42,115 nt of DNA from Perkinsus chesapeaki ATCC PRA-425 (Eukaryota > Protista > Perkinsozoa), in NCBI GenBank assembly GCA_013115145.1, contig JAAPAO010000293.1:1-42115 (forward strand), read 5' to 3'. Positions within the stretch are counted from its first letter, which is position 1. The number at the start of each line of letters is the position of its first letter. Positions 3,701 to 38,025 of the stretch are shown here, piece after piece. Both the position numbers and the translations under genes were made by a program. The notes beneath the pieces are model-generated. The model searched no databases and was not told the origin of the DNA. It saw only the letters and a program-made list of their open reading frames with translations.

Positions 3701-6700
3701 TTCGCTGAAATCCCAATAATGTGACTTATCTTCGACTTAATATTCGAAAATTATGTGACGTTCTATTATTTTGTAACGGGGTTTATTATATAAAGTTATT
3801 TATTAGTTCAGTACAATTTTATTTGCATTAAATTTCGGCAGAAATTCCGACAACGTCAATTCTGTTACTCAAATCTCTCATCAGCGCATTCACACAACTT
3901 CATCCAACTTTCGGAGTTCTATAATAAAAATGATACACAAACGTTGAATGCTATTTAGTAAATAACAAATGATAGCCGCCGGAAATAGGGGAAAAAGAAA
4001 AATTGTCAAAAGCAATACACCACAACAGTACTGGAAAATTGAAAACAATTATTTTCCAACAGAACGAAGAAAATCGAAAACATGTTGATCTGATTTCAAT
4101 TAATAAAATATCGCTATCAACACGTCATTTTACAACTGTACCTATTTTTCTGACCCTCGTGGACCTCTATGAAGAATAATAATACAGAAATCAAAATAGT
4201 AACTGCCTAAAATTTCTAAATTTCCCGGGAAAAATGGTAGTAAACAATAACGAAGCACTGCAAAATTCGAAGAAAATACATCCTATAATATTGCAAATAG
4301 TGTAATACACTTATGTACAAAGAATCATTGCATTCTTTGTAAAAGACCATAAGCGATAGTGCGCAGGACGACTCCCCCATCGCCGACTTACTCTGTCGAA
4401 GTGATTTGGAGTTTGATGGTTATTTGGGTTGAAGCAGCGAATGTAATGAAGGCCTGTTTGGTCAAGCATCTTCAACATCTTCTCCAACTCATCAGTGAAG
4501 TGCTTTCTCACCGACTTGAACTTCTCGCATTGCATTGAGCAACCCTGACAAATTTTCATGAAATTCAGGAAATTTTTCAGTGAAGATGTGACGAGATATT
4601 CCCAAAAAACCGGTGAGATAAAGATACTCGTCAGTTACTGAACGATCTCCAACGAAGAAAATCGATTCACTTGGAAAATTAAACATACATTTCTTGGTCG
4701 CAAACTAATTTTCAACTCTAGTGGTAAAAATAATATTTTTACCACTACTACTTTTACTTCATACTGCGAAATATTTTTTAAAATATCATTTAATTGACTC
4801 CAATATATTGAAACTTATCAATCTATTATCCCATAACAGTGTTATCATAACACTTCCCTTTCATGCATAATCTCACTCCAGAAAATCATTCCATCCAAAA
4901 CTACATTCAAAGCGGGATGATAAATTTCACCAACTTGCCCCTGAACCAATACTCTCGAAAATTGTCCTTACCAAGATTCGAACCCAGGACCTCTCTCACC
5001 TCAGCATCGCCCAACTCCTTAATCCATGGGTTTGTGCTTCCCAAAATAAGACTCTCCATTTCGGGGACCATTCGATCATTATTCTTGTCCATCCAACCGC
5101 TCACTGTGTAACTCACATCGCCTGGAAAAATTTTTGTTCGCACATTAATTTTGGTAATAAATTGTTGGAGAGTAGTCATTTAGATCCAAAATTTGAAGCT
5201 CAAAAATTTGCAATTTAGGAAAAAAAGAATCCAGGAAGCGATTCGAGACCGCAAGTTGAGTTGATATGGCAACACTGAGGAAACAGATTAAGTACTTTGG
5301 AGGAAAATTTCCGCAAAATTTCATTCAATAAATAATATGCTACCAACGCTTTCACACTTTCCACATCACTGTTACAAATAGATCAAAAATTTCGGAAAAA
5401 TTTTCCATTTTTCGTGAAAAAATTAGCAATTTTTCCTCACCAGCATAGTGGGTAATAACAAATCCACTTGTTATCTTTTCTCGGTCAATTTTCGCTCCTT
5501 TTCTAAATCCTCTATTCGGCGGCACACGCTGCGGTTTAGGAGGCTTCAATTTACACCCAGCACTTCCATCAAAGAACCTCTGTTGAACCTGCTCATTGAA
5601 AATGCCTCCACCGGGGATCGAACCAGGGACCTTTAGATCCCGAGCTTACCTCTGCAACGTATTTGTCATCATCTTCCGGCATCCCTCGAGAAGCTCTCAA
5701 ACAGCAGTCATCCAAAATGCTCAGCGCGCCACTAAAAGCACCATTATTTACTACCACTTTTTTGAGAGTCATCGCGAGAAAAACAAACTTTATAATAACT
5801 ATTAAAACGGCAAAAATTACTAAAATCACCAAAATTTTCCGACTTTTCCCAAAAATTTTCCACTTACTGTATAACTCTAACCGTAGGTGTTGCATCCGGT
5901 AATGGTACAGCTTCCCATTGTATTCCTTCAGCTTGATAAGCTTGTTGCTCCCTATCCAATACCTAACCACGCTCACCCGATTAGTCGGAACAAAGATCAT
6001 CATTTTTTATCCGCAATTAAGGCTGGAGATTGGCGCAATAGGAAAATCCCGCTCTTTGCAAAAATTTCGGTAATTTTTCCTGTGTAATTCTCCCCTCGCA
6101 CATTCGCGAATTTATACGAAATTTCCTCAATTTCACCCGAAATTTCTGCATTTTTTTTCGGAATATCCGTAATATTTTCCCGAAATTTCTGTAATTTTTA
6201 CCGAAATTTCCGTAAATTTTGCATGTAACCCTCACCTTCGACACAAAGAATTGTTGAAGTCGTTCATTGGTGAGATTGATAAGCAGCTGCTCGTACGAAT
6301 TCTTCTCCAAACTTTCGAATCCGTAAATATCCAAAACTAAAAATGGTGAACAAAAATCGCTTCGCTCCGCCGAAATCTTGCTTACTTCCAATGTGATTAT
6401 ATAATCTCTCCATGTCATTCGAGCCATCATTGTACCCCATCAGGGAATTCACTTTTTTCACGATCCTCTCGAAAAGTCTTTTGTAGATAATACGAATTAA
6501 CGTATTTAGAGATTGTGCCACCTGAAAAAAATCGAACAAAAGTTTACCGAAATTTTCCGTAAATTTCCTGAAATTTACCGAAATTTCGAAGCTTTGCTGA
6601 AATTCCCCTATTTCCACAAAATGTCAGAAACTTTATATCCGGAAAAAACTATTTTTTCCACAAAAACATATATTTGTTGTTGATATCCACCCTTACTTGT

Positions 6701-9700
6701 TCAGGCGTCCGAGCGACTTGATAGGAACTGGCCGCATTATTAAGCTTCATTCGACGGTATCTTAGGTTGACGCCAGTTTCGTGGCGAATAAGCGGAGCGA
6801 AGCTCTCTCACAGCAAAGTTTTGTTGAGCAACATCGTGTCCAATCCCAGAAGCGAGGCCGCATCATCCAACAAGAGAAACTCATTGGCGACCAAGTTAGA
6901 GGCTGAGGGAAGGAATCTTTAGGTTAACCGTGCATGATACACAATATGTTAACATAGCGACCATACTTGTATCCATTCCTCCTTGAGACGGTGGCTCAGG
7001 CTCTGCTTGACTCGCTTCTCCAAGTGTCCCTTCGACCGGACCTGTGAATCGACAAAGAATGAGAATGTGGGACTGACAACTCGATCAACAGCAAAGATAT
7101 TTTTGAGGTTAACTTGGCAACTTACGAGGAACAAAGATACTTAAAAGATTCCCCTCGACTTGCCTTCCCCAGCCTCATCCTTATCTTCCTCGAATTCAAC
7201 CTCTCCCAATAACAGCAAAGAAGCAACAATCGAAAAAATATCCCTGGAAAAAACGTCACTGCGCCACGAAATTATCAATGCTTCTTACTCCTGATCCTCC
7301 TCAGTTAGTCCCACAGCTTTCAAGGAGTCGCCTGAAAGGAGAAATTGCGGAAAATTCCGAGAAAATTTCAGGGAAGAAAGGACTCACTACGATTACTGTG
7401 TACGAAATTTTCAGGTAGAATCTTTTATCGATCGAAGTTTTGGTATTAAAGGAGTCCAATTACAGAATGATAAAGAACATCTCAAAAAGAAAGGTGAATT
7501 AATTATTGTATTTTGAACAGTTTTTATTGAACAATTTTCCGAAAATTTTCTGGAATATAAAAACTGGAAAAATTATATTCTCACCTAATTTTTGAAAGAA
7601 TATAATCAATAACAAATCTCGTAAGAACAAATTTAACTTACAAAGCTCCACAAATCTCGCCGCATCATTTGCTCTTTGCTCGTTACTAACAACCGACTCC
7701 CCTCCTTGATTGGTTAGAGAATAATCTCGACCTGCACGCAGATGAGCTCAAGCCAACCTAAAGATACTCACCATCATCACCACGCAGTTTCAACTTCTCC
7801 TGCTGGTCCTCGCTACAACCAGCTAGTAGTTGGTAAAATACATGATAATTTCTGATAATAGCATCGTCACTGCGCCACGAAATTGTCTCTTACCTTTCGC
7901 CAGCAGCATGACTCGTCACACGAGCGCTTTCGAGGAGGAATGGTTTCAAAGACGCGCAGACGAGTCGACCTCCTTTAGTGTACCATAATGACGAATATTT
8001 TCCGAACCTGATTATAAGGGAAATCTTGCCATCTTACTCCCACTTGCATTTCCTTAACGCCCTGCCTTACCTGCTGCTGTTATTGTTTCTCACTGTACGT
8101 GCGTTGCCGAATGCTTCCAAGATAGGATTTGCCTTCAGAACCTTCGGGGGAGAAATTGGGGAAAATCCGCCATGAGAATTTCGGAAAAAAATACGAATTA
8201 CTAAATTTTCTAAATTTCTTAATTTTTGAGAAAACTCTAGAGAACCCTGAATTAGAAGTCCTCCATTAGAATTTCATGGCGCGCAAGAATTCTCACTTTA
8301 TCATACAGCTCTCCCACAGTATGCTGTACTTGGCCCGTTATTGAATGCACCTGAGGAAAGGAACATTACATCTCAGAAAACAAGGAAAAATTTCCCATGC
8401 CAGACAATAGTACTACACGAGTTATATTGCTACTATACCTAGGTATCGAATCATCAGTTCAATCATACTCTTTAAAGTAATAAACCATTCCTTATAAATC
8501 TAACTGTTAAAGAATTTAATAATTATCAACCATTAATTGCCCACTGACTGTCGTGACTATTAGTTGAATATTATCTCTATGGATTACTCCGCTGTTACGT
8601 GATAAAGCATCATCTATCAGCATCATAAAAAAGTTGTTCTCGCAAATTTTTTAGTCCTAACTCGTTCTCGTTGGCACTTCACGCTCGAAAACGTAGGGTA
8701 ATAAAATATTTTGTAAAGGAGTTTATTTTTCTCGATCGATATATAAAAAATTATTTACTTCATTTATATTGAAAATGGCGGCCGGCTATTCGGCCGCTAA
8801 GACCCATCTACCATATGAAACGGGAAGGTGAGCTCGTATCACGAAGAGCACAACAGAGCGATTCAGGCAATACCAAATGGGCATCATAAAAATGCCTGAA
8901 ATAAAATATAAATTTGCATTTTTAGTGGAATTATATTTAATAATTAATTTCTGTCTAAGGAAAATTAATAATATCTTAATTTACTTTTTACACTTTCACT
9001 CACATGTGGCGTATCTTCTGCCCATCCACTTGTTTGTTTTTTTGCCAAATAAGACGCCACAATCTTCGCCGTTTCAGTCTTGCCAGCTCCAGATTCGCCG
9101 GATATCAATATGGCTTGAGACTGTTGAGTTGAAATCTGAACAAACCGAATAATATCCACAATTGCCGGCAGAATCACCTCATCACTACATTAAACTCTTT
9201 ATTTTCAAGAAGCTCAGTTTTCAGAAAATCTCACAAAATCACTCGCATTTCCAGGAAATTTGGAATTTTCCACGAAAATTCACCAAAATTTACCAGTTCC
9301 CCCCAAAAAAATTTCCACTTACAAAATTCCTATAGGCCGCCTCAGCAATCGCATAAGGATGCGGTGGCATCGTATGTGGCGGCTTTTTCCAGTACTCTGG
9401 CATCCTGTCCTCTCCTCCCAATAGCTTATATGGATTCACAGCCAACAGCACACTACTAACATATGTATACACCAAATCCTTGCCGTATCGGACTTCCATA
9501 TTGTGAAGAATATTGGCCTCATCGATATGAATTTGCATCGTTACGTCCGAGTGGCCCCCGGGAACTTCATCGACCGTTTTATCGTAAATCTTAATTTGAT
9601 TCAGTGGCACAATTTTTGTCCCTCCCACGGAAGACTTTCTGCTCCCTCCGATGCTCCTGTCCAGCCCCTCCGGGAACTCCACATTCGCTCCGCCTCGACC

Positions 9701-9799
9701 CGCCAACGAGGCGATCGTCGCCAAACGGTAACCGTGTTTCTTCCACGGCACCCAAACCATGTCACCAGATTGAAGCGAGGGGATCTCAGTCGAAGTCAT
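800..9799 (-). CDS. Multi-exon unconventional myosin heavy chain, class VI-like (alveolate MyoJ/MyoK-like), with IQ-like and coiled-coil tail
   Basis: ATG at 9799. Spliced exons give [15 protein letters not shown]-loop [83 protein letters not shown] and [15 protein letters not shown], then an E/K-rich coiled coil (1400-1680). The 3' end is uncertain (800-1316); 800 assumes two terminal exons with similar GFYY..IR.HY motifs. Confidence 0.93.
3181..3783. mobile_element. Non-autonomous TIR DNA transposon (~600 bp, TA target duplication, Tc1/mariner-type) inside myosin intron 3097-4391
   Basis: 3179-3224 (TAAACCCCGTTACAAAATAATAGAACGTCACATAATTTTCGAATAT) is the exact reverse complement of 3740-3785 (46 bp including the flanking TA). 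The interior has no intact ORF; a minus-strand RTIRRRL peptide resembles a Tc1 HTH remnant. Confidence 0.88.
4963..4999 (-). pseudogene. tRNA-Pro-like 3' half forming the 5' end of myosin intron 4545-4999
   Basis: Minus strand GTGAGAG-AGGTC-CTGGG-TTCGAAT-CTTGG-TAAGGAC-A-ATTTT resembles eukaryotic tRNA-Pro positions 37-73 (GTGCGAGAGGTCCCGGGTTCAAATC...). The intron is supported by the in-frame join ELGDAE|[12 protein letters not shown]. Confidence 0.6.
5603..5640 (-). pseudogene. tRNA-Phe-like 3' half filling most of the 61-nt myosin intron 5589-5649
   Basis: Minus strand GATCTAAAGGTCCCTGGTTCGATCCCCGGTGGAGGCA then TTTT. The first 26 nt match eukaryotic tRNA-Phe(GAA) from position 37 (GATCTAAAGGTCCCTGGTTCGATCCC). 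Splicing is needed to keep the frame (KYVAE|VQQRFF); the unspliced frame stops. Confidence 0.8.
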
Positions 9800-10279
9800 G
9801 ACAAGAATAACAGTTACAGGCTTGCACAACCGAATTGACAACTCGAACTCAATGCCACAAATCTTCGTAGTGCGAATTCTTTGAGGACTACACAGTGCTC
9901 GCCTACCTTAGCCCAGGTTCTAAGTTCGCTCATCGACGATAAATAATTCATACAGGGAGATGTAAAAACTGACCAAAATTTTCCGAAACTTAGCCAAAAA
10001 AATCCCCTTTTCGAACACATCTATGCCCAAAAATAGCTATTTCCGAGATCTATACACACTTCTCATTCACCAGTAACGCCTTTCATTCCAACAGACATTT
10101 TGGCTCATTGAGCGACTTCAGCAAACTTCCCGGCAGACTTGCTTAACCACAGAATGGAGCGAAGAGATTCACATAGAGCTTCGATTGGATAATCATATCT
10201 CACAAACAACTGTTATTCTCGAAAACTAACTCAACAGGTTCAAATACAGCTACAGTACATCACCAAAATAACATATTTT

Positions 10280-10693
10280 TCATCTGGCTTCTAGCAAGAG
10301 TACGACTTTCCCATCAGCATTGATCCAAAAGCCTTCCCCACTACGAACTCTGTGAACCTCCCCAAAATCACCCCCTCTAGAATGGCCACCGCACACATGG
10401 TCGTAGTTCAGCAGGAAGTCAAGGTATCTTTTATCGAGCTCCTTGTAAGCATCGACAACAAGGAGCTCGTCCCTTTCCATAGCGACGCCAAATTTGCCTT
10501 TAAACTTCTTATTTCCGCAGGATACTTCCACGACAACACTTCTGGCATCCGAGTTGAAATCATATCGAAGCTTTGCCTCAGAACGAGCCACCCGGCAGGT
10601 ATATATGTGATGAGGCACCACTGATACCAAACAGACGAGCAAGTCTGTCATGAAACAGCAGCAGAAACAAAAACGAAGGAGGGGCGAAAGCAT
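10280..10693 (-). CDS. Hypothetical protein, probably secreted (~137 aa, single exon)
   Basis: Open frame from ATG 10693 (MLSPLLRFCFCCCFMTDLLVCLVSVVP...) with a hydrophobic N-terminus and globular-looking remainder; no family recognised. Confidence 0.45.
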   Translation of the reverse strand: MLSPLLRFCFCCCFMTDLLVCLVSVVPHHIYTCRVARSEAKLRYDFNSDARSVVVEVSCGNKKFKGKFGVAMERDELLVVDAYKELDKRYLDFLLNYDHVCGGHSRGGDFGEVHRVRSGEGFWINADGKVVLLLEAR

Positions 10694-12156: not shown

Positions 12157-15100
12157 TCACTGCATCCTCGCAATAGCCTCTTTAGCTTCCTTCTCTCCCA
12201 GTAACCTAACACAGAACAAATCGATCACCAGGGCGCGCGCTTTTTACACCATTCTCACCTCACCGTAGCCTTATGGCTGCCACCCTCGCCAAGACTTGAC
12301 ACCGAGGCCGCCGAGCTCGGACGACCCGAGTTGGTTCGACGCCTTTTGGCAGCAGGCTCGGCAGCTGCAGCAGCGAGGGGGTCCGAAGGGGGGATAGTTA
12401 CGACGTAGAACCACCTGAATATACATAATCGATCACGTGATCGATTTGTGCTGTCACCTGTGGTAGATGTGTTTCGGTTCATTTTCATCCTTTATTTTCT
12501 CCTTGGATGTTATTTTTCCTTCCGTACCATCCGAGAGCTTCACTTCCTTACCAATCATGTCATCCGAACCAAGCCAGACGTCTGAAAATAATAATTACCC
12601 CACCTCTAAAAACAAGACAACTTTTTTGAGGAGAGCCAACGAATGAATGTTGAAACCGCAAAAAAGTTGAAATGCAAACTTCCCCTAACTGGCCTTCTCT
12701 TGACCACACCATTCAACAGTTACAGTTTCGACAACACACGGTGATGTGTAAATTCTTCCCCGAAAAATTTCAGCTCAATATTCCTTCTTTTCGGAAATAT
12801 TTCAATTTTTCCCGCGGCACTATATTCTTCATTTCTACATTCCCTCCTACCTTTAACTTCCCCTCCCTTCAACCGCCTAGCTGCGGTCTTCACACTAACA
12901 GGCATGTGGTCATCCTTACTCACACTGACACCATTCCAGGCCAATTCTACGGAATGCTGGGAGCCACCGCCGACCTGGAAAGGAAATAGGAAATATGATA
13001 ATTCATCGTAATTATAATAACATTATATTCATTATTATGACAATAACTATTCTATAACATAAATTATTTATTATGAATAAAAATGAAAATATAATATTTT
13101 TCCCAAGAAACTGAGTAACTCCTCAGAAGAGAGCTTTGAAGAATCAACCAACAATCAAAACAACCAAACACGAAAATGGCCAAAAACATCTCCACGGAAT
13201 TCTGCATGATTCATCCAAAGATGACCCGAATTCTCCTCCCAATATATTCTATATAAGCGAAATGAAAGATTCCAATACAAATCGATCACGTGATCGATAA
13301 ACATCCCGACGGTTTCACCTGCAATACAAACTTCGATTCGAGTTGTTTGCTCTGAACAAGATAAGGCGACAATTCATCTGTGGCGTCGGTGGAGCTCGTT
13401 GCGCCTGATGCACTCTACGTAATCTATTTTGCATCTTGCATGGTCCAACCTTTGGATATGTCTCTGGGGCAGTTTCCTAACTGGTGAGTCTCACCAAATC
13501 CCCAAGTGTAGAAATCTCCACTTTTCGTGCACGCAAGGGCCTAAAACAATGAGTATTTCCCGTGCGCCACAAAAATAAACCGTAACGAACGACTCATTAC
13601 GGACCATTTAAATGAGAAAAAACCCCCAAAAAATTTTCCCCCATATTTTCTCATCGTCCCAGACGAATGATCACTACAAATGAGAACAACCTTTAATAAA
13701 GTCACGCGCCACGAAATTCCACTTACATGTGATCCGCCCGCTGCGACATGCATAACATTTTTCAACTTTGATAATTTCGACGGATTCGTCACATCGTCAT
13801 TTCCACCACCCAACCCAGAATAGTCCCTTCTTCCCCAGGTGAACCTGAAGAACCGTTGAGGAAATGCAAGATTTACCGAGATTAGCAAGATCTCCTACAC
13901 TTCTCCCTCGGTAGTAAGGGCCACTGTATGGAAGCTTCCTCCGACGATCTCTTTAACGGAACATCCGAGCTTGGTCGATGATAAATTTTCTACTTCTACC
14001 GGATATCCTAAAACACAATGAGTATTTTCTGTACAAGGAAATTTTTCCGGCAGAAAATTTTCCGAAAAGTTCTCGGAACTTTGGTCGAGAATTCCATAAT
14101 AGAAAGGGCGTAGACGCCCAAGCTTCAAATTCCCCAAAAACGCCACCTAAATTTCTGGGCGGCCGCCTCAACGCCACGCAGGTGCATAGGGGTGGCCAGG
14201 TGGGCGATACCTCAGGGGCATTGGTGAGTGTCTGCATAACAGGTAAGTGTACATAAGGAGCGGCATGTCACTGAGCTTTAGTATCTGGGATAGTCTATCC
14301 CTAATATATACCCATCATTAATTCTCTGCACACTGTTGCTGTCGATATTATTACCGGGCTCTAAGGAGATTCTAAGTGCTTGCACTGAAGGTAGTTGATG
14401 CCCGAGTAGAACCAAGGCCGATGGCCCATGGCCGATGGGCTAATGGCTTGTCACCGTAAGTTGCTTCAACAGTGTATACAACATTTCCGGCCACCGAACC
14501 TTCTATTGAGTAGTAGCGCTTGGCCGAGCGAATGGCGTCTTTCAGAGCTTGAAGGTTAGTACGCTGTTTCCTCAGCTCCGTCTGTAATGAGTGGGGGCGC
14601 CCCCAAAATTATAAAATAATGGGGGGGCCCCCCCAAAGCGTAGCCTAATTTTTTTTGTATTTTAAACAACGTCAGGAGAAAACGAAGTATTATAGTGAAC
14701 AAAANNNNNNNNNNTTTTTTTTTTTCTTTTTTTTTTGTTTTTTTTGTCTTTCCTCCCGTTTCTTTTTTTTTTGGGGTGGGCACCTATATTTTTTTTTTTT
14801 GGCGCCCCCCCCCCCCACTCTTCCGCTACCATTGTTTTGCGATCTTTCGACACCAGGTACGGTACCTAGGAGTTACTAGAGGTACCAAGTGTTATCCCGA
14901 AAGTTATACATATTCCAAGGTACACCTCAAATGACAACACCACGTCGACCAACCCTGTAACTTACTCGACTCGTTGACCCCGGTGCGGGGCAACGTTCCG
15001 CTACCAGTGTTTTGCGATCTTTCGACACCCGGTACGGTACCTACACTTTCTCGCTTCATATTATGAAGCGAGAGACTAGAAAGCTCTCGCGGGCACGTTG

Positions 15101-22237: not shown

Positions 22238-22588
22238 AGTAAGCGAACAATTAGTGTAATTTAAATAATGATAGTAAGGGAACAATTAGTGTAATTTAAA
22301 TAATGATAGTAAGCGAACAATTAGTGTAATTTAAATAATGATAGTAAGCGAACAATTAGTGTAATTTAAATAATGATAGTACAAGNNNNNNNNNNNNNNN
22401 NNNNNNNNNNNNNNNNNNNNNNNNNNNNNNNNNNNNNNNNNNNNNNNNNNNNNNNNNNNNNNNNNNNNNNNNNNNNNNNNAGTAAGCGAACAATTAGTGT
22501 AATTTAAATAATGATAGTAAGCGAACAATTAGTGTAATTTAAATAATGATAGTAAGCGAACAATTAGTGTAATTTAAATAATGATAGT
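22238..22588 (+). repeat. 35-bp tandem minisatellite spanning an N gap (22386-22480)
   Basis: Unit AGTAAGCGAACAATTAGTGTAATTTAAATAATGAT; 4 copies before and 3 after the gap, nearly identical, with no spacers. Intergenic, ~300 bp upstream of the RCC1 ATG. Confidence 0.95.
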
Positions 22589-23514: not shown

Positions 23515-26500
23515 TCACGCATGTATGGATGGCAAAGGGGGAGAAGGTGAAGAAGATGATGCGACAACAGCAGCAACAGCAACAGCCGCCCCGCTTCTTG
23601 TGGCCTCTGAATCGGAGACAGGTTCGCCATCAGGAGCTGAAATAAAAACATACCATCCCGGAATAGAACCGACGACCTCTGGATATACAAACAGCCGCTC
23701 TACCACTAAGCTACCTGGGAACACACCATCCTTCCGCATCTCCGATTGACTTGAAGATGGCATCGCCTTAACCCCTCCTCCTGCTGCTGCTGTGTCGGCA
23801 GTGCGTGATGGTATTGTCTTCTTGAACTCTACTTTCAGCCTCTTACTTCCCAACTTGAACCCATTCAAGCTATCAACGGCTTTCCTCGCCTGAACAGCAT
23901 CCAATAATAACCAATAATTTACTCCTATACCTACCCACCCTCGCACGAGGGTGATACCAAGCACATTTAAGCTATCAAGTATTACATTATTGAAGCCACT
24001 ATTAATAAATAGTTCTGCGCGCCCTGAAAACTTTAGTACGCTCCAGTATCCTGGCGTCAAAGTTCGAAGCTGTTTTCATATTCTCTTTCGCCAAGTGTTC
24101 TAATACGAAATCTTAGAATCGTACATCACTCAATAGCGAACGATAAATCACTAAAAAACTGAATATTTTACACGTTGGGGGCGCTGTATATCTCACGGCC
24201 AGTTGTACACAGAAATCGGACTGAGCTGCCCAACTACACCTATGCCGGCAGTTCCACTTCTCTCTCCCGCACGAGCAGAGTGTGAACCAGATTTATGTGT
24301 ACCAATCGTTAACACCCCTACTCTGCTGAAACCCAAAGCCACCTTAGCCGAGATCCGCCTTACACTTTCAAAATCAAAGTAGTTTACAAAACCGTAACCC
24401 CTTCCAGCAACAACCTTGACAGAATCGATAGCACCATACGGCTCGAAAAGGACCCTGAACAAAACTTTCTCACGCGCCACGAAATTCACGAGTACTTAAG
24501 TGTAGCATCATCGCATTCGGGCGGTAAATGGAATATAAACAAAGCTGTGAGGGTTTGGTTCGTCGTTGGTAACGCCAGGAGTGCCGATGAACTATTCAAC
24601 GTAGAGAGCTTACCTAAGATGAAAAAAGTAATTCAGAAATTATTTTTCTACAGTAGAAAAAGATTTGCACTTTAAAATAAATTATTTATAGGCAAACTGC
24701 TTGCTGGGTGTTTCGGTTGATCCAGAACAAACGACGATCAAATCGCGGAGCTGCACCAATACTCCCCAAATTCCAACGCGCCTTCGAGCGGTCAGCAATT
24801 GAGTCAATAATTTGACGTTCATATCGCACAAACTTTGATATTCATGTATGACCTTTATATATCAATAACAATAGATCACGCCACGCCCCACGCTTCAGTT
24901 AGTGCACGAATCGATCGGAAAGCGCTTCTACTAGACTTTAGTACCAACTACAGGCCTCTGGTTCGATTCCCACATGATATAGCTCTAGTCTCAATGATGA
25001 CATATATGCGTCTGTATCCACTTGACGATAATATACAGGATGCTCCAATTTGGTATGCAAACTATCAAATCTTATTTACTTACCGCATTAGAGCGGCTTA
25101 GTAAGCCAAAACTTGAAAATACATTTATTATAACTATGGAGATCCAATGCAACATCGATCAACCGTTTCATGGTTATACTAGACACGAGCGTGTTTTGGT
25201 GATTTGTATATCGAACTGAAACACTCTGTATTTTAATACACAGTTACTGATATAACGCTGATACGATACTATACCATTCCTGAATGAGCAAAGCTACATC
25301 TATAAATAATATTCTAACGTCATGCGTCTATAATATCTTCACGATTTAATCTATTCAGACTCGACCGACCTACACCTACCCGCCAAAGGTGTTCGCTGAC
25401 CGCCGCCGCCCGAGTTGTGCCGTGATAAAGACGATGCCATGAAATCTGCGACATATCTGACAGCACTTAATAACCTTCCCATACGATGCAATGGGAGTGT
25501 AAAACTAAGTACAAAACATTATGGAATTTATTTTCAATTTTAAAATACGGTATTTTTTCTAGTATCACATACCCCAATCAATGCTCACCAGTACTAGGAG
25601 TTCGGACGTGGAGTGGCCTGCTGCCGAGCTAGATATTTCCATGCCCCTGACTCCACACTTCAATACAGCTTCCCTACTCCATTTTGCTTGAATTCGTCAC
25701 GTCGCCCAGAAGGACAATCATTTTTCCTTCTCCCCAAACGTACTCGTTCCAGGCGCTGTCCCAACTAGCTTGTTGACTTTCGTCCACCTGCGGCGCTGCA
25801 GTACGATAACCGCCACGACGACGTGCGCTGGCTGAAATCGATCACGTGATCGATTTCGTTACCTTCTGCAAACGTACCGGTGTTGCTACTGGCAAATCGA
25901 GCTCTGTACTGTGTGCCCGAATGAACTCGTTGTTGAGGCCATCTGGCAACCACTCAAGTTCGAACCGCGGTAGAGGCAGCATTTTCACTAACTTACGATA
26001 GTCCCTCCGTTCCAGTATCATCTGTCTTTAAATTGAAAGCACCAGTCGAAAGGGAACGACCACCTGAGCGATACGGAGCTCTGCGAATCATTAGCAAATT
26101 CTGTTAGTTGGCCGCAAGTTCGATCCCCAGGCCTATCACTTTTATGCGGAAAAGTACTATTAATTATTGATTATCAATAAGTATAAGGTACTTGATTATA
26201 TATAACTTAGTTACTATATAATTTATCTATTATAAATATTATACACATAGATAGACTGTATAATTATTATTTATTAAATATATATTACTAGCTTACGCAG
26301 CACAAGTAAGATACCAAATTTTATAAATTATTTCTTATTAATTATAATATATAAAAGTAATATATTCCACTTGCCTGCTCAGTATTATAAACACACTGTA
26401 AAATAGTTATCATTTTCCCTCACTATGTCAACTATTCGAAAACACATCATAACCTTCTGACTAAATACCAAATGGCTCTCGACCATTCTACCTCTGGAAG

Positions 26501-28504
26501 TCCCTCCGCCAGCCACAGGTTCGATCCCCGGGTAAGGCATATATAAGCCACTCTTAGTACTGAATAATTGGTACCGTACTGCATCCGAATCAACACGGTC
26601 TGGACGGAACTCTGGCCTGAATAATAGAAATAACTGTTCAACGAAATATGAACCACATATGTGGTCAGTCGGATACCGGAAACACACACAAATAACTGTT
26701 AAAATCAGCAGATGCAAATTTCCACAAAATCCAACAAAAGATATTTCAGGAGATGGCAAGCATTGTTGAAAATAGACTGTAATTAGGGGATAGAACTGGA
26801 AATACACTTATTTCATCTCTTCATTTTCTGTTTTTCCGTTTTTTTCCCGAAAATCTTTACCCTTTTTCTCCGACTCCCTACCTCCACGGCTTCAACTGCA
26901 GCGTCGTAGTAATATTCGTTACCTCATCCGTCAGCTGCACCCCGGCAAACGCCCTCATGGCATTGTAGGAGCTCTCTTCGGTGTCAAACCGCACCACAGC
27001 AATTCCACGAAATCTTTCTCCATCTTGATCGAATAGCATCCTTATACTTTCAATGTGACTTTCATAATCGGGCCCAAATAAATCATTCACCTGCAGCCAT
27101 ACCAGTGCGTAGGAAGTATAATTACTGATAACCAAATAATTTAAAGCAATATGCGCTATAGAAGAAAGGTTGCAGACTCAAGTCGAGGTAACGTGGGAAA
27201 TATTAGTATTGATAGTGATATATTTTTATAAGTTACCGTCTGTTAACGGTAAGCAATATGTACCAGCAATAAGTAAGCAATAATGATTATCAACCGATTC
27301 ATGCGTTATTTGTATTCAACTATCGGTATACGAATCGAAATTGCTATTATTTTCAATAGTAAATATGTGTCACTATTATTACTTCTGTATGAGTGTATGA
27401 TGTCGGTATTCCTGATACGTACAGATTGCTGTGAATGTTCGCTTTCCAAGCTGGCCGGGCAACAGAGACTTTCATCCTTTTACCCTCGGGTAGTCGGGTG
27501 CCTGTCAAATATATCTTTACCGCACTATGAAGAATTTCCTCAAAGATATCTTTACCGCACTATAAAGAATCTCCTCAAAGATATCTTAACCGCACTATAA
27601 AGAGTTTCCTCAAAGATATCTTCACCGCACTATCAAGAGTTTTCTCAAAGATATCTTTACCGCACTATAAAGAGTTTCCTCAAAGATATCTTTCACGCAC
27701 TATAAAGAATTTCCTCAAAGATATCTTCAACGCACTACCGAGACTCATTCGTGAATCTAGTTACTCAATAGACAGTATCAGCTAAACCAATGGCGTACAA
27801 CCATCAGTGCTTCGTTTAACTGGGAAGTTGTGATGATATCTTCATCACCAAAAACATCGAATTTCCAAGCTTATAAGATTATCAATAACTAGAATAATCC
27901 TGTCCGCTTAACTCGATGAAGGCTTTCATAAAATTTTTCAATTACAAACACTAGCATTTTGATATTGGTCTGACGCCATCTTTTATTACTATTCAACGCG
28001 TCGACAGCCGCTTGAGCGTCCTCGTTTGATTCGAAATTAACAAATCCAAAGCCCATTGAGATTCCTGTGGTCTTGTCACGGACAACCTAAAAACGAGAAA
28101 ATCTTACTGAAATTTGCAGTCTGGAAATTTACGTCAGCGCAGTTATAATTCCGAGAACCGGCTGTTCAAAGTCTCCTAGGACTCGATTGAAGATTTCAAG
28201 TGAATCCTAGGAGCAATTCTGAAACGCAGGAGAGGTCGCCTATTGAGAAGCAGGCAAGTTGGTAATTTTCCCGAAATTTTCGGGAAAATAAGAAATTTTT
28301 GCGGGAAAAAATAATGATCCGTTATTATCCTTTTGCAGTATTTTTGTGAGAAAAAATGGGGAGTAGTTATTTAATATCACAGACGAAAAATTGGTGAATT
28401 ACCTTAATTGACTGAATCGGTCCGTATCTTTCGAACATCTCTTTAAGGTCAGATTCATTGAACGTAGTGGGAAGATAGTTAACAATAAGATTCGATTTAT
28501 CCAT
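23515..28504 (-). CDS. ELAV/Hu/CELF-like RNA-binding protein with at least three RRMs (could be two adjacent genes)
   Basis: RRM1: MDKSNLIVNYLPTTFNESDLKEMFERYGPIQSIK|VVRDKTTGISMGFGFVNF...ALN|STRLPEGKRMKVSVARP. RRM2: SNLYVSGIPTSYTHTE|VNDLFG...RFRGIAVVRFD. Distal RRM: LFIFHLPPECDDATLK|VLFEPYGAIDSVKVVAGRGYGFVNY and ARKAVDSLNGFKLGSKRLKVEFKK. Linker exons at 25300-26600 are only partly resolved. The ATG at 28504 directly follows a TTTCAG acceptor, so upstream exons or trans-splicing are possible. Confidence 0.8.
23645..23714 (-). pseudogene. Degenerate tRNA-Tyr(GTA)-like sequence forming nearly the whole 78-nt intron 23637-23714
   Basis: Intron GTAGCTTAGTGGTAGAGCGGCTGTTTGTATATCCAGAGGTCGTCGGTTCTATTCCGGGATGGTATGTTTTTATTTCAG. 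It has a D arm GCTT/GAGC, A box, loop TTGTATA, AGGTC variable loop, degenerate B box and a T-run. The anticodon and acceptor stems do not pair. Confidence 0.7.
25832..25862 (-). other. 31-nt GT-AG intron consisting of a 24-bp perfect palindrome
   Basis: GTAAC-GAAATCGATCACGTGATCGATTTC-AG. Removal gives the open frame GTFAE|ASARRRGG; retention shifts the frame. Confidence 0.7.
27506..27737 (+). repeat. 35-bp tandem minisatellite (~6.6 copies) in an intron of the ELAV-like gene
   Basis: Unit consensus CAAAGATATCTTTACCGCACTATAAAGAATTTCCT with 1-3 substitutions per copy. It abuts the 3' splice site at 27502-27504. A 17-bp piece recurs at 28608-28624. Confidence 0.95.
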
Positions 28505-30581: not shown

Positions 30582-31034
30582 ATGTGGCAGGTCCGAAAAT
30601 TACAAGTGCAAAACGATAATCTTCGTCGAACTCTCCGGAACACTCTACGGTGGATCAAAACCTCCAGAGGGGAACCGGCTACGACTGGCAAGGAGGAGGA
30701 AGCGAACGAAGGTCGGAAGGGTGGTGATGACGGAGGGGTGGAAGCTGTGACGTGTTGTGGTGAATGCCGAAAGTTGATTGAATGCAACACTTCTTTGGTG
30801 GAAGTTAATAGGAAAATACTGGCAGAGTATCGAGCAGTCAAAGCCGAAAGGGATATACTACTATCCAAGGTAAATGGGGGGAGAGAAAGGTTGAGTGGCA
30901 GCGCGGTTAGTGCGTTATGTCTTCATGCGAAAGGTTGTGGGTTCTATTCTAGGGTGGGTCATTTTTAGATTCACAGTGCGAAGGGCATCGACCTCAGATA
31001 TTTCTGCTCACCCGATGAAGAAGTCATTTTGTAA
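30582..31034 (+). CDS. Hypothetical coiled-coil protein (two exons; may extend upstream to the acceptor at 30488)
   Basis: Frame open from 30489 (DVEYEPSAPE...MWQVRKLQVQNDNLRR...RAVKAERDILLSK). GTAAAT...TTTTAG intron, then IHSAKGIDLRYFCSPDEEVIL*. Confidence 0.4.
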
Positions 31035-31931: not shown

Positions 31932-32205
31932 ATGAGTATCATCTTTATGGTGGTTGGACTGTACGCGGTAATTTTCTCTGACTTCATGCCTTATACTGGT
32001 ATTGGACTGTTGGATTGGGTGAAAGATGATTGGTAAGGGGGGATGGTCTAGTCGTTAGTATACTTGCCTTTCATGCCCATGGTCGTGGGTTCGATCCTCG
32101 CTTAATCCATATCGAAGTGGTTGTGGAATGTTCGATAGCCTCCCTGAAAGTTCATATTTCCTCGCGGTTTTCACCCTTCGTCGCCGACGCAGTGCTAGAC
32201 ACTGA
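31932..32205 (+). CDS. Possible small membrane protein whose single intron (32033-32117) is tRNA-like
   Basis: MSIIFMVVGLYAVIFSDFMPYTGIGLLDWVKDD, a strong GTAAG donor at 32033 and AG at 32116-32117, then a short open frame to TGA 32203-32205; no family recognised. Confidence 0.3.
32037..32109 (+). pseudogene. Full-length (73 nt) degenerate tRNA-Glu(TTC)-like sequence
   Basis: GGGGGGA-TG-GTCT-AGTCGTTA-GTAT-A-CTTGC-CTTTCAT-GCCCA-TGGTC-GTGGG-TTCGATC-CTCGC-TTAATCC-A. Canonical spacing, intact T arm and B box, Glu/Asp-type D arm; the anticodon and acceptor stems are partly mismatched. Confidence 0.72.
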
Positions 32206-33691
32206 CGCAACTGGTTGAATCCCCACCGGACACGTGGGCAAGGAACCAGCCCTTCGATCTCAAGAGCCTGACATTGATGAACCACGCCACAGTCTATCCA
32301 GTCCGGGATTGGTGGCACTTTGTCGGTTAACCCACGAGAATAGTGCAATGAGGAGGCAACAGTGGCGATGCACATGTTTTAAAATTGATGTGATGAGCAG
32401 TTTTGTAGGAGTTATATATAAGCACGATGTTGTCGTGTAGGAATGATATTTACGTACCATACTGATATTCGTCATTTATATAAGGGAAGTTTGTGATAAA
32501 ATTAATAATAATAATAATAATAATAATTATTCACAGCCTGCCAAAATTAGGCAATCTAGTCAATTTGGAAAATACTGCTGGAGGACCATATATTATTGTC
32601 TTCGCGCGCCAATTCTAGGAGTTAGCAAAAATCATACAAATGCGCAGCAACTCTACGATATCCATTTTTGAGCTCCCCAGGCCCGACAACGGAACGGAGT
32701 GGTGTGCTTCACTTGGCGACAGAATTTCGGACACCATATCTCTCAGAGATTCTTGCTAGTAACTGGAAAAATGCAAATTTACGGAAATTTCCGAAAAAAT
32801 TTCCGAATTTTTGGGAATTTCATGCCCGCTATATGTCTTCATGACATGTCTGAATTTCATGTCTAAAATATAAGCCACTTATGACTTTGTGGCTTCCATA
32901 AGTCCCTTATGTGGTGATGATTCCCCTCCTTCCCTGCTGTTAGGTACTATTCGTGTCTAATACCAGCATTAGTTCCATTATATTTTATATTTATGCTATG
33001 GCAGTGGACGAGCACACAATATTTTCGATATGCTTGACATTGTCCACCTCTTGTGTTCGATTAATTAATCGAGGACTTCGACCAGCGCGGTTTAACTTCG
33101 GCAGGAATATTAGATGCGCCTCGGTGACTTGCGGATGATTGAATCGTGTTCCGCGTCAAACACTGGCGTCTCAGGGGAGTGGTGAAACCTTATCGGACTT
33201 GACTTCATTGCAACATTTGGTGGTGATGAAGAAGACTGTACAAAGTAGAGGATGAAGAATCTTTCGCACCCGCTCGAAAACCGCCGGTTAGTAATTGTCT
33301 AAGTGTGTTATCGATGAATGATTAGGAGGAGCGGATGGGAAATATTGTAAAGTGAGGCAAGAATCTGGAAATCTAATCTTAACTTAGTATATGAGTAGCA
33401 ATACTAGCGTCGAGCTGAGCTTAACGCTCCATCCAACAACAAATATACAAATTGTATAATACAATATGCTGCTTGTAATAGTTGATACCTATAGAGTGAG
33501 ATAATATTAGTGAAGTTGGCGATGAAACAGATCTGAATGAGGCCTCAGTCATGTTATAATACTTCGTACGCATACCAGATCTTGAAGTTTGAAGAGGTGT
33601 TGATAATTGCGTGAATGAACAAGCTGTCGGAGTGCGTAATATCTGGTACCGCTCTTTAGAAAAAAGGAAAAGGGGTATCGGAAAAACAGCA

Positions 33692-33770
33692 GGAAATTTT
33701 CGGGAAAATTTCGGGAAAATTTTGGGAAAATTTCGGGAAAATTTCGGGAAAATTTTGGGAAAAAATTTCA
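33692..33770 (+). repeat. 11-bp tandem repeat GGGAAAATTT(C/T), about 7 copies, ending at an AG acceptor
   Basis: Directly visible; similar GAAAATTTC-rich tracts fill several other introns (e.g. 6100-6220, 6540-6600, 32780-32820). Confidence 0.85.
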
Positions 33771-33805
33771 GTAGTTTTCGCTATTTCACAGTATTATTGG
33801 CTTTT

Positions 33806-36417
33806 ATGGCAGCGGGACCATCAGGGCGGCTACCTCTCATCATTGATGAAGACCCAAGCACTCCATTGATCGAGGGGCCATGTAGGGACGGAGACCAATG
33901 GCATCTAAGTTGCCATTTCAAAGTAAACTGCTTCTCATACTAGCTCACTCATCTTCCTGTTGTAGGCGACGAAAGAGAGGGCATCAGCGGAACCGATACT
34001 GTTGTTGGCGATGGTCTTATTGGGGCTGTCACCAATGGCCATTATGCTGGCTTGCAGTAAGTTGGAATACGCTCATTCAGTTTTAGTATCCAAAACCGCT
34101 CGATAGGGGGAAATAATTTGCATGAGGAATTTCTCGCACACGGTTCATCGGTTATCGAAAAATTTAGGTTGAACTTGAGGGTTTTCACGTGGTTAAGATT
34201 TCGGGCGAAAAGATGGGGCGTTTTCACGCGCCCTATTGAGAGTTTGGTTACCATTGTGCAGCTCGCTGTGATGAATGCGAAAAATTTCGGAAAATTCAGG
34301 GAAATTCTGGGGAATTATGTAATTTTTGATTTTCAGGCTCGAAACAGATTCACAGCCTTTTAGTGGCAATGGTTTTAATGCATATATTGGTCATGTTACT
34401 AATACCGATTATTTTTATATTGGCAAGTGAAAGGTCATCGAGACGATCTTATAAGGAATATTTCATAGGGGTGAGATAATACAGACAATCGTTCACATCT
34501 TGGAAAGTACATAAATATTCCTAGTGCGAAGATATGCCTCATCACTCTGCACAATTTCATTGTTCTCTTTACCGGCTACGAATCGGACTGTTCTGCAAAC
34601 TCGTATTTTAGCGACTTTGCCTGATCACATAATGCTGGAAGAAATTTCCAAAAATTTCCGAAATTTTTGATTGTTCATGTCCACATTCCCACCGATGGCT
34701 GGTGAATCCTCCCGGATGAGTCTTGAGTAGACGAAATGACGGTCAGGACTTTTGCTCCGCTCCGCTTGGTTTTGATTGAGATTTAATAACCTTTATACCA
34801 GCACTACCAGTTGAGCTATCATGGTCAGGCCATTCGTCGTCCGAATTTCCCGATAAGCATCTTGTCGTTCTTGGGTGTACTTGCAGCTGGTTGTATCTTC
34901 TACGCGGCTCTACGATGTCGACATTCACCGCCCGGTAGGAGTGCGGTATGCATACCAAACTTCCTCCAACAACTGGCTGAGTATGGCTTCGGTGAGCACC
35001 TCGTCGATGACGGGTTTTCATTTGTTATTTCAGATGTACCTTTCTCGTTCCTTGTCGCGATTGGATTCTACTTCGGCGTTGTGAACCCGATCCTTGAGGA
35101 GTGGTTCTGGAGGGTGTTCCTCTATAGAGAGCTCGGACAAAGGTAAGACTACCGTCGCGATGCAGGCTATTAGACAACACTTTAACTAAGTTGGTCACCC
35201 GGGACTTGAACTAGATGTGAACTATAGTATTAGCCACTAGGCAGTTATATAAGCAGCTGCATAATGCTTATAATAATTACTTTTAATACTTATTAATAGT
35301 ACTGCACGTGCACAGCCAACACAGTGCGGTCAGTGGACCTGGGAAAGATACTTTTTATCAGTTTGTTTAAATTTATTAATAGATGTACAATCCCTTACGG
35401 CAGTACCGATGAGAATTGATTCCCCCAGCATTAAATGCTGGAGAGAATGCTGAGCATTCTTTTTTCGATTATCAGGTTTTTCCCGTCGTGTGGAACTCCT
35501 CCAGGTCACATGTACACAGAAGAGAAAAATTCGGTCGATCTGGAAGGTAGGCAAATCTATTTATTAGTATGCTGCTTTGCACTAAAGAGTTAAACGCGTA
35601 CTCGACGAGTCGTGACTTGATTCCCACACGCACCGTTCAAGTGGGCGGGAATATGTGAAGAATCAGAACAGTTGCAGTAGTTGCCACTTACTACCGTCGC
35701 CAGACTAAAAAGCTTCCGAGGACTGCCCATTGGACTCGTACCATCTTGCGTGATTGATTCTTTTCTGGTCATCCTTGCCGTTTCAGATGCATGTACATCT
35801 TCAACTTGTCTCATCAGAAGTATCTCCGAGGTGCCTGGCCAGTTGCTCATATCCTCCCTTTACGCATGCTACCACTTCATTATTGTCAAGGACCTTCTTG
35901 AGAGCTATTCCTTGGCGATCGCAGCATTCTGCGGTCTGGTGAGCAGTTCGTGCGGATTGATTCTCAATCCTTCTATCGCGCAGAAATCGAGGCTACTTGA
36001 AAAGTTAGCATTGTCTGCGCCGTTTTGCCCATTGTATCATAGCGGTCATTTAAGGTCTTGCACGCACTTGACGCCGTACTGGTTTTGTTTCCATTGGTCG
36101 TCTAGAAATTGTTAGTTAGAGATCACAGTGAGTCTCACTGAGCAGGTGGTAGGAATGGAATTGTTTCTTCCTCCAGATAAATGGGACAAATGACACAATG
36201 GCTCTGTCAGGTGCTCCTCGGTCGTGTGTTATCCTATTATTGCCGACATGAAAGGCGTTTTGGCTTTATCGCGGCATGCTTCCTGCATTCTGGACTTGAC
36301 TTTGTAAGATTCTTATTACTCTTCACATTGAGCACCAGTGGTGCTGCACCACACACCTTCGCAAACGACGCTATTACTAGTAATCTCGCTCGCCCGAAAG
36401 AAGTCGTTTCTCGGTAG
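33806..36417 (+). CDS. CPBP family (type II CAAX protease/Abi-like) intramembrane metalloprotease, multi-exon
   Basis: Spliced TM-rich exons from ATG 33806 (MAAGPSGRLPL...PILLLAMVLLGLSPMAIMLAC|SSKQIHSLLVAMVLMHILVMLLIPIIFILA). CPBP motifs NPILEEWFWRVFLYREL, SSLYACYHF and ACFLHSGLD occur in the correct order. The 3' end is approximate. Confidence 0.78.
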
Positions 36418-37334
36418 GTGTCTGCCTGCAATGGTGGACCGAGTTCCTTCAGTGCTGAAGCATGTGTCACTTGGAACTTTTTAATGAGAAAAGTGTCTCC
36501 GGCGGCGAGGTCTAGGATTTTCAAAAAGATATACAAATCCTTCAACGTTCAACGATCTTGAAGATTCTAGAGATTGAAGTCTAGAAAGTTTGATAGAAAT
36601 TGATGCGATTCCGAGTGGAGAAATAACCACTTGTGTTCTCATGGCTCCTTATATATGTGTAGGTAGTGGATGTTGCAGTACTATGGCAAGTTCTGGCAGC
36701 AAGGACTTCACCAACTTGATTCATTAAATAAGATAACGATTGCAACATTTTTGTCAACATAACAGGAGACATTTTGTGGCCAATAGCATTTGTGTTACAA
36801 ATCTCGTTGTTTCTGTGACCGATATATTTCGGCATGCGAAATGTAACTTCCGAACTAGTTGTTTTTTCCACCAATTTTGTGTGCGATGTCGTCCTCCGAA
36901 ACTGCCATGCGTCTTCGCATTGCTCTTCTCAAGTGAGTTGGTTCATAAGGCTCGCCGAGCTGAGATCCGAGGGGCTTTAAAAACAGAGAGACTGATGATT
37001 TCCCGAATACAGACGTATCAACTCATTTGAAGAATGCACTGCAACTTAATCGCTGCAATTAAGGCAAATCCGGTATAGCGGGGCACTGTCACTCGACAAG
37101 TGGGAGAGGCTAAATCATCGTTGCTCTGTCCTTTTACACAGTCACTGGTACAGAAATCACGCTGAATTTCGACTCGAAGTTCTGAAGCCGAATGTGGGAA
37201 ATCTTCGCGAAGCAGATCCAAGCATAATAGTTCGGCAATTATCGAGAAGTGACTCGAAGGCTTGAGTGCGCGTCCTCCTCAGGCACCCGAAACGTCTGGC
37301 GTTGAAGGCGAAATTGGCCGCCATTCCTCCGAAA

Positions 37335-38025
37335 ATGGTGTCGATACAAATAAATAATAATAAATACGAAGAACCGGCTAACCAAACGATATTGCAAGTC
37401 GCCCACAAACACGGAGTAGGTGGAAATAGTGAAATCAGTGATTCGCGTTAAGAAGCATTATAATGTTAAATGAAAGTGTTTGGAAGTCAGAAATATTAAT
37501 TTATTATTCAGGTAAGGATTCCTCATAATTGCCGTGCTGGAATCTGTTGGGCTTGTGAAGCCAACGTGAATGGTAAACCAACGCAGACTTGCTACACACC
37601 AATCCAAGATGGCATGTAAGAAAAAATTCTTCTAGAGCACCTTATTCATACGGTTGGTCAGTAGTATCTAATATTTCTGCAACAATTGAAGGTTAACCAT
37701 CCCGGTTCGATCCTCGGTCTCGCTGGGGATTCTTTCACGGGGCATCTACTCGTGGAGGGCGTGTTATTGTAGTGCAAGATAATGTGCGGCCCGACGAAAT
37801 AAAAGAGAAGTCGTTTGGATATTCACATTTGACAGAGACTGATATCGTGAATTATTATCGGACGAGGATAGACTGACGTTTATATACAGTATGCCTCCCC
37901 GCTACTATATTTCTCCACGATTTTTCGGAAGGGCTCGGTGATGATCAACGCATTGTGGTTATAGGTATGTCGTAGAGAAGGCGAGAGAGATGATGCATTG
38001 GAGGCAGCACACTGGCGATGAATAA
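37335..38025 (+). CDS. Small 2Fe-2S cluster-binding (ferredoxin-like) protein, ~83 aa, 3 exons
   Basis: MVSIQINNNKYEEPANQTILQVAHKHG|VRIPHNCRAGICWACEANVNGKPTQTCYTPIQDGM, with a CX4CX2CX11C motif. It either stops at TAA ~37619 or splices (AT|G) to YVVEKAREMMHWRQHTGDE* ending at 38025. Confidence 0.78.

Follow-up and report, generated by a model that had tools for sequence, protein, structure and literature searches.

The source of intron sequence and the origin of new introns are long-standing open questions, and to our knowledge the mass sources of introns documented so far are introners of the transposon type. The present work deals with tRNA-like pieces in introns of Perkinsus chesapeaki, a parasite of oysters and clams, which were followed in a single entire contig of 42,115 nucleotides (nt; contig C2106, hereafter the window) and over the whole genome, and which probably belong to a large class of old tRNA-gene remnants located in short introns, with a B-box core conserved between species. 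Introners have been described in Micromonas, Aureococcus, fungi and dinoflagellates. The members of an introner family are alike and of recent spread, and as a rule they are DNA transposons that have terminal inverted repeats and are accompanied by target-site duplications (PMC11282704); the 'invasive intronic elements' of Amoebophrya carry inverted and direct repeats together with non-canonical splice sites (PMC7789003). The Perkinsus elements resemble introners as a repeated class which appears to coincide with spliceosomal introns in many unrelated genes and which would itself give some of the splice signals. They differ from introners in being tRNA-gene remnants with canonical GT-AG borders, highly diverged and free of detectable duplications, and also in their presence in both orientations and in two species.

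Short interspersed elements (SINEs) of tRNA origin consist of a tRNA-related head, which contains the A and B boxes, followed by a body and by a tail which is either A-rich or related to long interspersed elements (LINEs). The comparison case for such elements is the exonization of Alu and other SINEs (PMC2394776). Similarly to tRNA-derived SINEs and retropseudogenes, the Perkinsus pieces represent tRNA-related B-box sequence of RNA polymerase III (Pol III) type scattered through genes, and their 5'-truncated copies with intact 3' ends resemble the products of target-primed reverse transcription, as in the case of SINEs. However, the Perkinsus unit has neither a SINE body nor a LINE-type tail and ends in the tRNA gene's own T-run, its copies make up the core and the 3' splice region of 40–100 nt introns rather than being passengers of long introns, and its core is conserved between species. 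A further point of comparison is given by the Extra-TFIIIC (ETC), or B-box-only, sites of yeasts and mammals, which are few and mostly intergenic. An isolated conserved B-box without a functional tRNA gene is common to these and to the Perkinsus elements, but the latter would number about a thousand and would be intronic and tied to splice sites. Within the same genus, the Dada DNA transposons of Perkinsus marinus, 4.7–11 kb in length, target tRNA genes and are inserted into intact ones, and more than 500 copies of tRNA genes are reported for that species (PMC3706591). Numerous tRNA genes serving as substrates of mobile DNA are a feature in common with our case, but Dada insertion does not explain 40-nt remnants of tRNA 3' parts in protein-coding introns. 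A first reading of the window, made from its letters only (below, the sequence-only reading), had preferred the view that tRNAs or tRNA-derived retroposons are being turned into introns, and had known of no account of introns built from tRNA; full-text literature searches indeed found no description of them, either in Perkinsus or elsewhere.

Neither ARAGORN nor the Rfam model RF00005, the latter both at the gathering score and at E ≤ 10, detected a tRNA gene in the window, which nevertheless contains at least ten tRNA-like remnants. The B-box pattern GGTTCRANYC occurred eight times against 1.2 expected, a count reached by none of 100 shuffled sequences. When a profile made from the genome-wide copies was run over the window with nhmmer, it recovered all five pieces of the sequence-only reading, which were all present at the places given there, with tRNA-like sequence as follows: 5640–5611 on the minus strand (reading GATCTAAAGGTCCCTGGTTCGATCCCCGGTGG), 4999–4957 on the minus strand (reading GTGAGAGAGGTCCTGGGTTCGAATCTTGGTAAGGACAATTTT), a tRNA body from position 7 on at 23714–23650 on the minus strand, a 73-nt tRNA-like body at 32038–32110 on the plus strand and a T-arm at 37701–37725 on the plus strand. 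The same profile added five further plus-strand pieces, at 24949, 25958, 26110 and 26512 within a minus-strand gene for an RRM protein and at 30927. Two assembly gaps (14705–14714 and 22386–22480) are each more than 1 kb away from any element and outside the RRM coding sequence, as well as outside the myosin coding sequence if the myosin start is near 9,900; continuity across them has no bearing on the finding of tRNA remnants.

Pattern counts over the 41.7-Mb genome, with the reversed pattern as the control, extended the class far beyond the window. GGTTCRANYC had 4062 matches against 1628 for the control, and the B-box followed by 9–17 nt and TTTT had 1381 (about 900 distinct) against 29, which marks a genome-wide system rather than an oddity of four introns. 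A pattern in which the B-box was not required, AAGGTC-N24-ATTTT, gave 125 matches against 18, and among the matches listed about three quarters did contain the B-box. Sixty-eight distinct sites were then sampled from the first-listed contigs without regard to content: seven proved to be tRNAs recognized by ARAGORN and 61 (about 90%) were fragments, whose logo reads aAAGGtCgCgGGTTCGATCCCcgG....GGCATTTTT. The usual remnant comprises the 3' part of a tRNA gene, that is, the variable loop, the T-arm with the B-box and the 3' acceptor strand, together with the discriminator base and the terminator T-run of Pol III, at which the units end; the A-box half is missing from most of the 61 copies, and neither a common body nor a common tail was found among them. 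Near full-length bodies occur at 23714–23637 and 30870–30968 in the window and at the sampled sites L055, L079, L097 and L099 (here and below, L-labels denote fetched sites and C-labels P. chesapeaki contigs). Most copies have no BLAST-level relatives and only a few close copies exist. The free T-stem pairs 51-63, 50-64 and 49-65 were paired in 43, 51 and 46% of the fragments, compared to 28, 61 and 41% in a slid control and 100% in real tRNAs, indicating that no tRNA-like RNA fold has been kept; the remnants are no longer tRNA genes. The real tRNA genes of this organism form dense multi-copy clusters on C2943, C2831, C1502, C1261 and C2406 (L013–L030, L121), with many slightly differing copies of Arg-TCT, Ile-TAT, Thr-TGT and Cys-GCA, which agrees with the numerous tRNA genes and the tRNA-targeting Dada transposons of P. 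marinus.

A large part of the remnants lies in short spliceosomal introns, whether sense or antisense, and often amounts to nearly the whole intron; in all, roughly a thousand or more short introns would be made largely of decayed tRNA-gene pieces. At two of the sampled sites a domain profile is parted by such a stretch: a 46-nt stretch GTAAGCGAAAGGTCCCTGGTTCGAATCTATGCAAGTACATTTTTAG (L106) separates positions 146–193 of the DUF726 profile from 195–239, and a 60-nt stretch (L091) separates positions 1–20 of PAP2_C from 24–59. These two profiles, the Myosin_head profile and the exon peptides of a C290/L132 pair, both considered below, are continuous only across the predicted intron.

The position of the T-run relative to the nearest AG divided the 61 fragments sharply: the first AG was found within 12 nt of the T-run start in 36 and at 20 nt or more in 25, with none at 13–19 nt. 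In sense copies the AG follows within 8 nt after the T-run, such that the 3' boundary of the element is also the boundary of the intron. The orientation of the copies was judged from the GC skew of their flanks, which replaced an uninformative comparison of the longest open reading frames in sense and antisense flanks. The coding strand in the window is G-rich (a skew of approximately -0.08 to -0.23 for the minus-strand myosin and RRM genes and a positive one for the plus-strand Rce1-like gene), and the use of skew as a strand marker is based on this agreement with Pfam-typed genes on both strands. Sense flank skew was present in 30 of 35 near-AG sites (strong skew in 22 versus 1) and in only 6 of 23 of the remaining sites without a near AG, one of these 24 having zero skew. 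Conversely, a near AG was present in 26 of 33 sites in sense by skew and in 5 of 21 antisense sites (Fisher p = 1.6e-4), and about 35–40% of the copies are antisense to the host gene. As the AG comes close after it, the T-run of sense copies would serve as the polypyrimidine tract; the sequence-only reading had placed the T-run at that position, and its location directly before the AG in sense copies is what we observed.

The 5' boundary is less uniform. In about 20 of the 36 near-AG sites a GT is located 6–26 nt upstream of the B-box, giving whole introns of about 40–60 nt, and others retain an almost complete tRNA body, their donor being at tRNA positions 7–10. The 5' boundary lies anywhere between -9 and -60 nt relative to the B-box, and some copies are internal to long introns. 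Some of the donors read GTAAGC, a sequence also found in the anticodon loop and stem of this genome's tRNA-Thr genes. A fixed break at tRNA position 37/38 did not show up genome-wide, the donor offsets being spread from -9 to -26. The reverse complement of the donor motif beside the T-run was not significantly enriched in antisense copies (7 of 21 versus 5 of 33 in sense copies, p = 0.18), and TTTTAC, present in four antisense cases, is suggestive only.

One host in the window is the minus-strand myosin gene, an exon of which has 89% identity to a Perkinsus olseni protein (exons were searched one by one). Its 61-nt intron at 5589..5649, containing the 'Phe-like' piece of the sequence-only reading, is supported by sequence, by the reading frame and by an orthologue in another species. 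It is composed of GTAAG, tRNA positions ~32–73 (T-arm, 3' acceptor strand and A73), TTTT and CAATGAGCAG, in this order, and it parts two exon peptides, the frame being broken by read-through. The piece was recovered by nhmmer with E=3e-6 and has two close copies elsewhere in the genome with 86–92% identity over 39–47 nt (BLAST). With one of these two, an unlinked copy on C2834, this intron has a common sequence from the donor GTAAGC onward, between unrelated flanks. In the loop-2 region of the same gene, a 454-nt intron at 4546..4999 begins with the 'Pro-like' piece (nhmmer E=1.7e-4): its first 43 nt (4999–4957) correspond to tRNA positions 37–73 plus the T-run, and the donor GT is tRNA positions 37–38, as had been proposed. 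This intron, supported by an intron in the other species at the same site, parts positions 486–530 of the Pfam Myosin_head profile, upstream, from 548–597, downstream.

The other species is represented by L132, a 10-kb Logan contig of another Perkinsus, the myosin gene of which was paired with that of the window by tblastx anchors. The exons of the two genes are 75% identical in nucleotides and 86% in amino acids, and the identity of four-fold sites is only 36% (n=238), which means saturation. Both tRNA-like introns of the window myosin are present in L132. The 61-nt intron corresponds there to one of 47 nt, GTGGACTGAGAGAACCCGAGTTCGATACCGGGCAGGGGCATTTTCAG, in which 23 of 30 core positions are identical, while at the 'Pro-like' site L132 has a 104-nt intron from which the tRNA element has nearly vanished, leaving a faint remnant only. 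A second pair, in antisense orientation, was found starting from L132, whose element at 8210–8232 corresponds to C290:3840–3874 of P. chesapeaki. In both species a phase-1 intron, 44 or 47 nt long, is filled by this element and separates conserved exon peptides, and the frames are open only if the intron is spliced out. Its core, AAGGTCCCNGGTTCGATCCC, is identical at 22 of 23 positions, in contrast to 8 of 19 in the part with the acceptor and the T-run; the T-run is conserved where it adjoins the AG. Eleven control pairs of myosin introns had 25% identity in the first and 30% in the last 30 nt, ruling out the trivial explanation that the last 30 nt are conserved in all short introns, and their best ungapped 30-nt windows mostly reached 15–20 identical positions, with 23 in one other intron. 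Thus, the element is present in both species at both orthologous introns examined (two only), which means that the elements predate the species split. Retention of the core despite saturation of the four-fold sites argues for selection on it, and the comparison points to purifying selection on the B-box core in at least these two cases. What is found here in terms of the ETC sites is a conserved B-box without a tRNA gene, with core identities of 23/30 and 22/23 against 36% at four-fold sites.

Several other differences between the two myosin genes were noted. The P. chesapeaki introns (for example, 9322–9136, 6696–6522, 6235–5963 and 5448–5126) are several-fold longer than their L132 orthologues and packed with short GGAAAATTTCCG / GAAATTTCGGTAAA-type repeats, as if the introns had been enlarged by a small repeat in this lineage alone. 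Between the conserved blocks at L132 3147–4327 and window 6369–6337 there are 1179 nt in the former and about 31 nt in the latter, with no common GT at the expected offset, and this reflects either a large difference in intron size or a difference in the gene model. The L132 intron 5471–5724 includes a stretch similar to a tRNA 5' half, of the D-arm type (TATGGTAGAGCGGCTGCGTGG), and its much longer P. chesapeaki counterpart is located at 4386–3099. Finally, the minus-strand intron 6903–6966, paired with L132 ~2654–2700, has no obvious tRNA likeness and a best window of 23/30; the motif common to both species, GGTTAACC/GATCAACC followed by CAAAGATT, may represent either a B-box in decay or some other signal within introns.

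The RRM-protein gene on the minus strand offers the advantage of a public gene model, KAF4664228.1 (520 aa, hypothetical protein FOL47_005246), which maps to the window at 100% and includes 12 GT-AG introns; word searches with two stretches of this gene had no match. One of these, a 78-nt phase-1 intron, is identical to the 'Tyr-like' stretch at 23637..23714 and consists of tRNA positions 7 to ~73 followed by GTTTTTATTTCAG; its donor GT is tRNA positions 7–8 when aligned to the genome's own tRNA genes, again as claimed before. The isotype names given by the sequence-only reading turned out to be insecure: the 'Tyr-like' piece has 81% identity over 58 nt to at least nine tRNA-Cys(GCA) genes of the same genome, its BLAST matches being real tRNA-Cys genes only, and the 'Phe-like' piece has CGG at the anticodon position. 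The sense orientation noted there applies to the introns it listed but is only part of the picture, since the RRM gene also contains three intronic and one exonic antisense copies. In a 54-nt intron (25943..25996), known from the gene model, the space is taken up by a tRNA 3' remnant in antisense, which reads AGTTCGAACCGCGGTAGAGGCAGCATTTTC on the plus strand; its nhmmer match at 25958–25966 (E=6.3–6.8) is weak and inside the range of shuffled controls, so that the call was made mainly from reading the sequence. The other two, found by nhmmer, are 26110–26145 (+) near the 3' end of a 428-nt intron (26064..26491), which was also recognizable by its sequence, and 24949–24973 (+) in a 766-nt intron (24614..25379), both introns being part of the gene model. 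The exonic copy, a B-box-like remnant GGTTCGATCCCCGGGTAAGGCAT at 26512–26545 on the plus strand (nhmmer E=7e-4), is located by the exon map in the annotated coding exon 26492–26616, about 20 nt from the donor, where it encodes MPYPGIEPVAGG, and is possibly an exonized piece of a tRNA-like element. Another annotated intron of this gene, 25832–25877 on the minus strand (46 nt), contains a perfect palindrome, AATCGATCACGTGATCGATT.

The candidate introns in the plus-strand genes are less certain. Of the four GT-AG introns proposed by the sequence-only reading, the two in the myosin gene and the one in the RRM gene gained independent support, but the acceptor and the frame of the fourth, the 'Glu-like' stretch at 32033..32117 (nhmmer E=2.4e-4), did not. 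It consists of GTAAG, the 73-nt tRNA-like body without a T-run and then TATCGAAG; the donor is plausible and the acceptor only putative, the frame past it running for only 29 codons before a stop. A putative last intron of 99 nt at 30870..30968, recognized from its sequence (nhmmer E=0.37, weak alone), begins with GTAAAT and ends with TTTTTAG, an entire decayed tRNA-like body lying in between, with a frame open to the donor and a 21-codon exon followed by a stop after the acceptor. The T-arm at 37701–37725 had been assigned to the last intron of a 2Fe-2S gene and is indeed inside the probable last intron, 156 nt long (37617..37772; nhmmer E=0.024), of a gene for a plant-type 2Fe-2S ferredoxin-like protein, whose upstream exon ends ..CRAGICWACEANVNGKPTQTCYTPIQDGM|GTAAGA; the decayed tRNA-like body is internal to this intron and adjoins neither splice site.

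On the account that we favor, tRNA genes or copies of primary Pol III transcripts would have entered or formed introns long ago. The units have A73 followed by the T-run and not CCA, which suggests tRNA genes or primary transcripts as the source. Intron shrinkage in a compact genome would subsequently have trimmed everything except the splice signals and the constrained core, and the core GGTTCGA(A/T)(C/T)C would have been kept by selection, something reading the motif. The reader may be a TFIIIC-like factor which binds the B-box in the DNA, or possibly the splicing machinery, if the latter recognizes this near-palindromic motif, which precedes the 3' splice site by about 20–30 nt whichever way the element is oriented. 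The whole-intron copies, the tRNA-encoded donors and the donor in common with the C2834 copy favor creation of introns by the element, while colonization of introns followed by trimming is favored by the two orientations, by the lack of duplications and by the scattered donor offsets; the alternative mentioned in the sequence-only reading, that introns are a deposition site for tRNA fragments, fits the data. A tentative generalization would be that selection has retained the tRNA 3' module, from the B-box to the terminator, as a building unit of introns in Perkinsus, either as an ancient element which created of the order of a thousand introns or as a B-box that is still read.

Several observations weigh against the account of an ancient class of decayed remnants with a conserved core. 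The cross-species conservation comes from two orthologous introns, and the apparently non-tRNA intron 6966–6903 is conserved as well as the tRNA-like one. The donor GTAAGC in common with the C2834 copy fits better with copying of whole introns than with independent decay. The sites sampled genome-wide were picked for an intact B-box and T-run, and therefore cannot by themselves show selection on these features, and the total of the order of 1,000–2,400 remnants is extrapolated from the pattern counts and the 68-site sample. All splice junctions are predicted from homology, from open frames and from a single public gene model of unstated evidence. A spliced-ORF test of the 61 sites gave a median of 26 codons versus 25 and 25 in frame-shifted controls, which was not significant, although this test is underpowered due to short exons and many candidate donors.

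Among the other explanations, the remnants may be functional as B-box sites like those of 'extra TFIIIC', or as some other DNA-level signal, with a secondary role in splicing, and the introns may be the only non-coding space tolerated inside the genes of a compact genome; both proposals are less likely than not. Among the copies selected by their flanks only, about 84% have an intact 10-nt B-box, while the stems have decayed; the core is conserved in both the sense and the antisense pair, and the T-run part of the latter is not, and the information content of the motif is well beyond the need of a branch site. On the other hand, the B-box is universal to all source tRNAs, which makes its apparent conservation partly a matter of ancestry, the orthologous pairs compared are two in number, and the tight coupling of the T-run with the AG in sense copies implies that splicing constraints also shape the elements.

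It is rather doubtful that the remnants descend from an ancient tRNA-derived introner, a Pol III-type element, usually 5'-truncated, which would have inserted into early perkinsid exons, each insertion making a new intron. Likewise on the doubtful side is the corresponding scheme for the splice signals, in which either the element or the target provided the donor, the T-run became the polypyrimidine tract and the target contributed the AG, the decayed products being what remains. Such an origin would account for the many copies equal to a whole intron from GT to AG (42–60 nt), for donors made of tRNA positions (7–8 and 37–38 in the window, GTAAGC as in tRNA-Thr) and for the likeness of the 'Phe-like' intron and the C2834 copy from GTAAGC on between unrelated flanks; in addition, both myosin tRNA-like intron sites fall within unbroken exons of some old myosin paralogues. 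It is at odds with the lack of target-site duplications (the longest direct repeat across the element had a mean of 5.8 nt versus 5.7 in the control), with the occurrence of both orientations, each able to fill whole introns, and with the lack of a near-identical copy family. With the element at orthologous sites in two species, gain finds no presence/absence support, and donor offsets range from -9 to -26 instead of being fixed, a scatter to which trimming to a minimal intron length would also lead.

An introner or retroposon of tRNA origin which is active at present, the preferred explanation of the sequence-only reading, is highly improbable. The genus is rich in tRNA genes and in tRNA-targeting Dada transposons (PMC3706591), and small sub-families with 86–92% identity over 39–47 nt do exist. 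However, the copies are highly diverged, with T-stem pairing decayed to the chance level, no target-site duplications accompany them, about 35–40% are antisense, no other BLAST-level copy of the 'Glu-like' and 'Pro-like' pieces is present in the genome, and the two orthologous introns are older than a split at which four-fold sites are already saturated. The claim that tRNAs are being turned into introns now is therefore not supported and is largely refuted. Working tRNA genes nested in introns, as known in C. elegans, are almost certainly not the explanation either, as, apart from a few near full-length copies (23714–23637, 30870–30968, L055, L079, L097 and L099), the acceptor 5' strands are missing, the T-stems are unpaired, and ARAGORN and Rfam recognized nothing in the window and 61 of 68 sampled sites went unrecognized.

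In practical terms, the remnants will confound tRNA scans and repeat masking in perkinsid genomes. Public genomes of P. chesapeaki and P. olseni are available, and genome records of P. marinus have been published (PMC3706591), making these organisms a tractable system for asking whether Pol III-type elements can seed introns, what an intron of 40–50 nt minimally needs, and whether intronic B-boxes are bound and functional. In Perkinsus, a ubiquitous type of cellular gene appears to supply the body of many introns and, in sense copies, probably also the polypyrimidine tract. If the B-box is indeed read, either by TFIIIC or as a branch-site-like signal, promoter elements of Pol III would be linked to the splicing or the chromatin of genes transcribed by Pol II.

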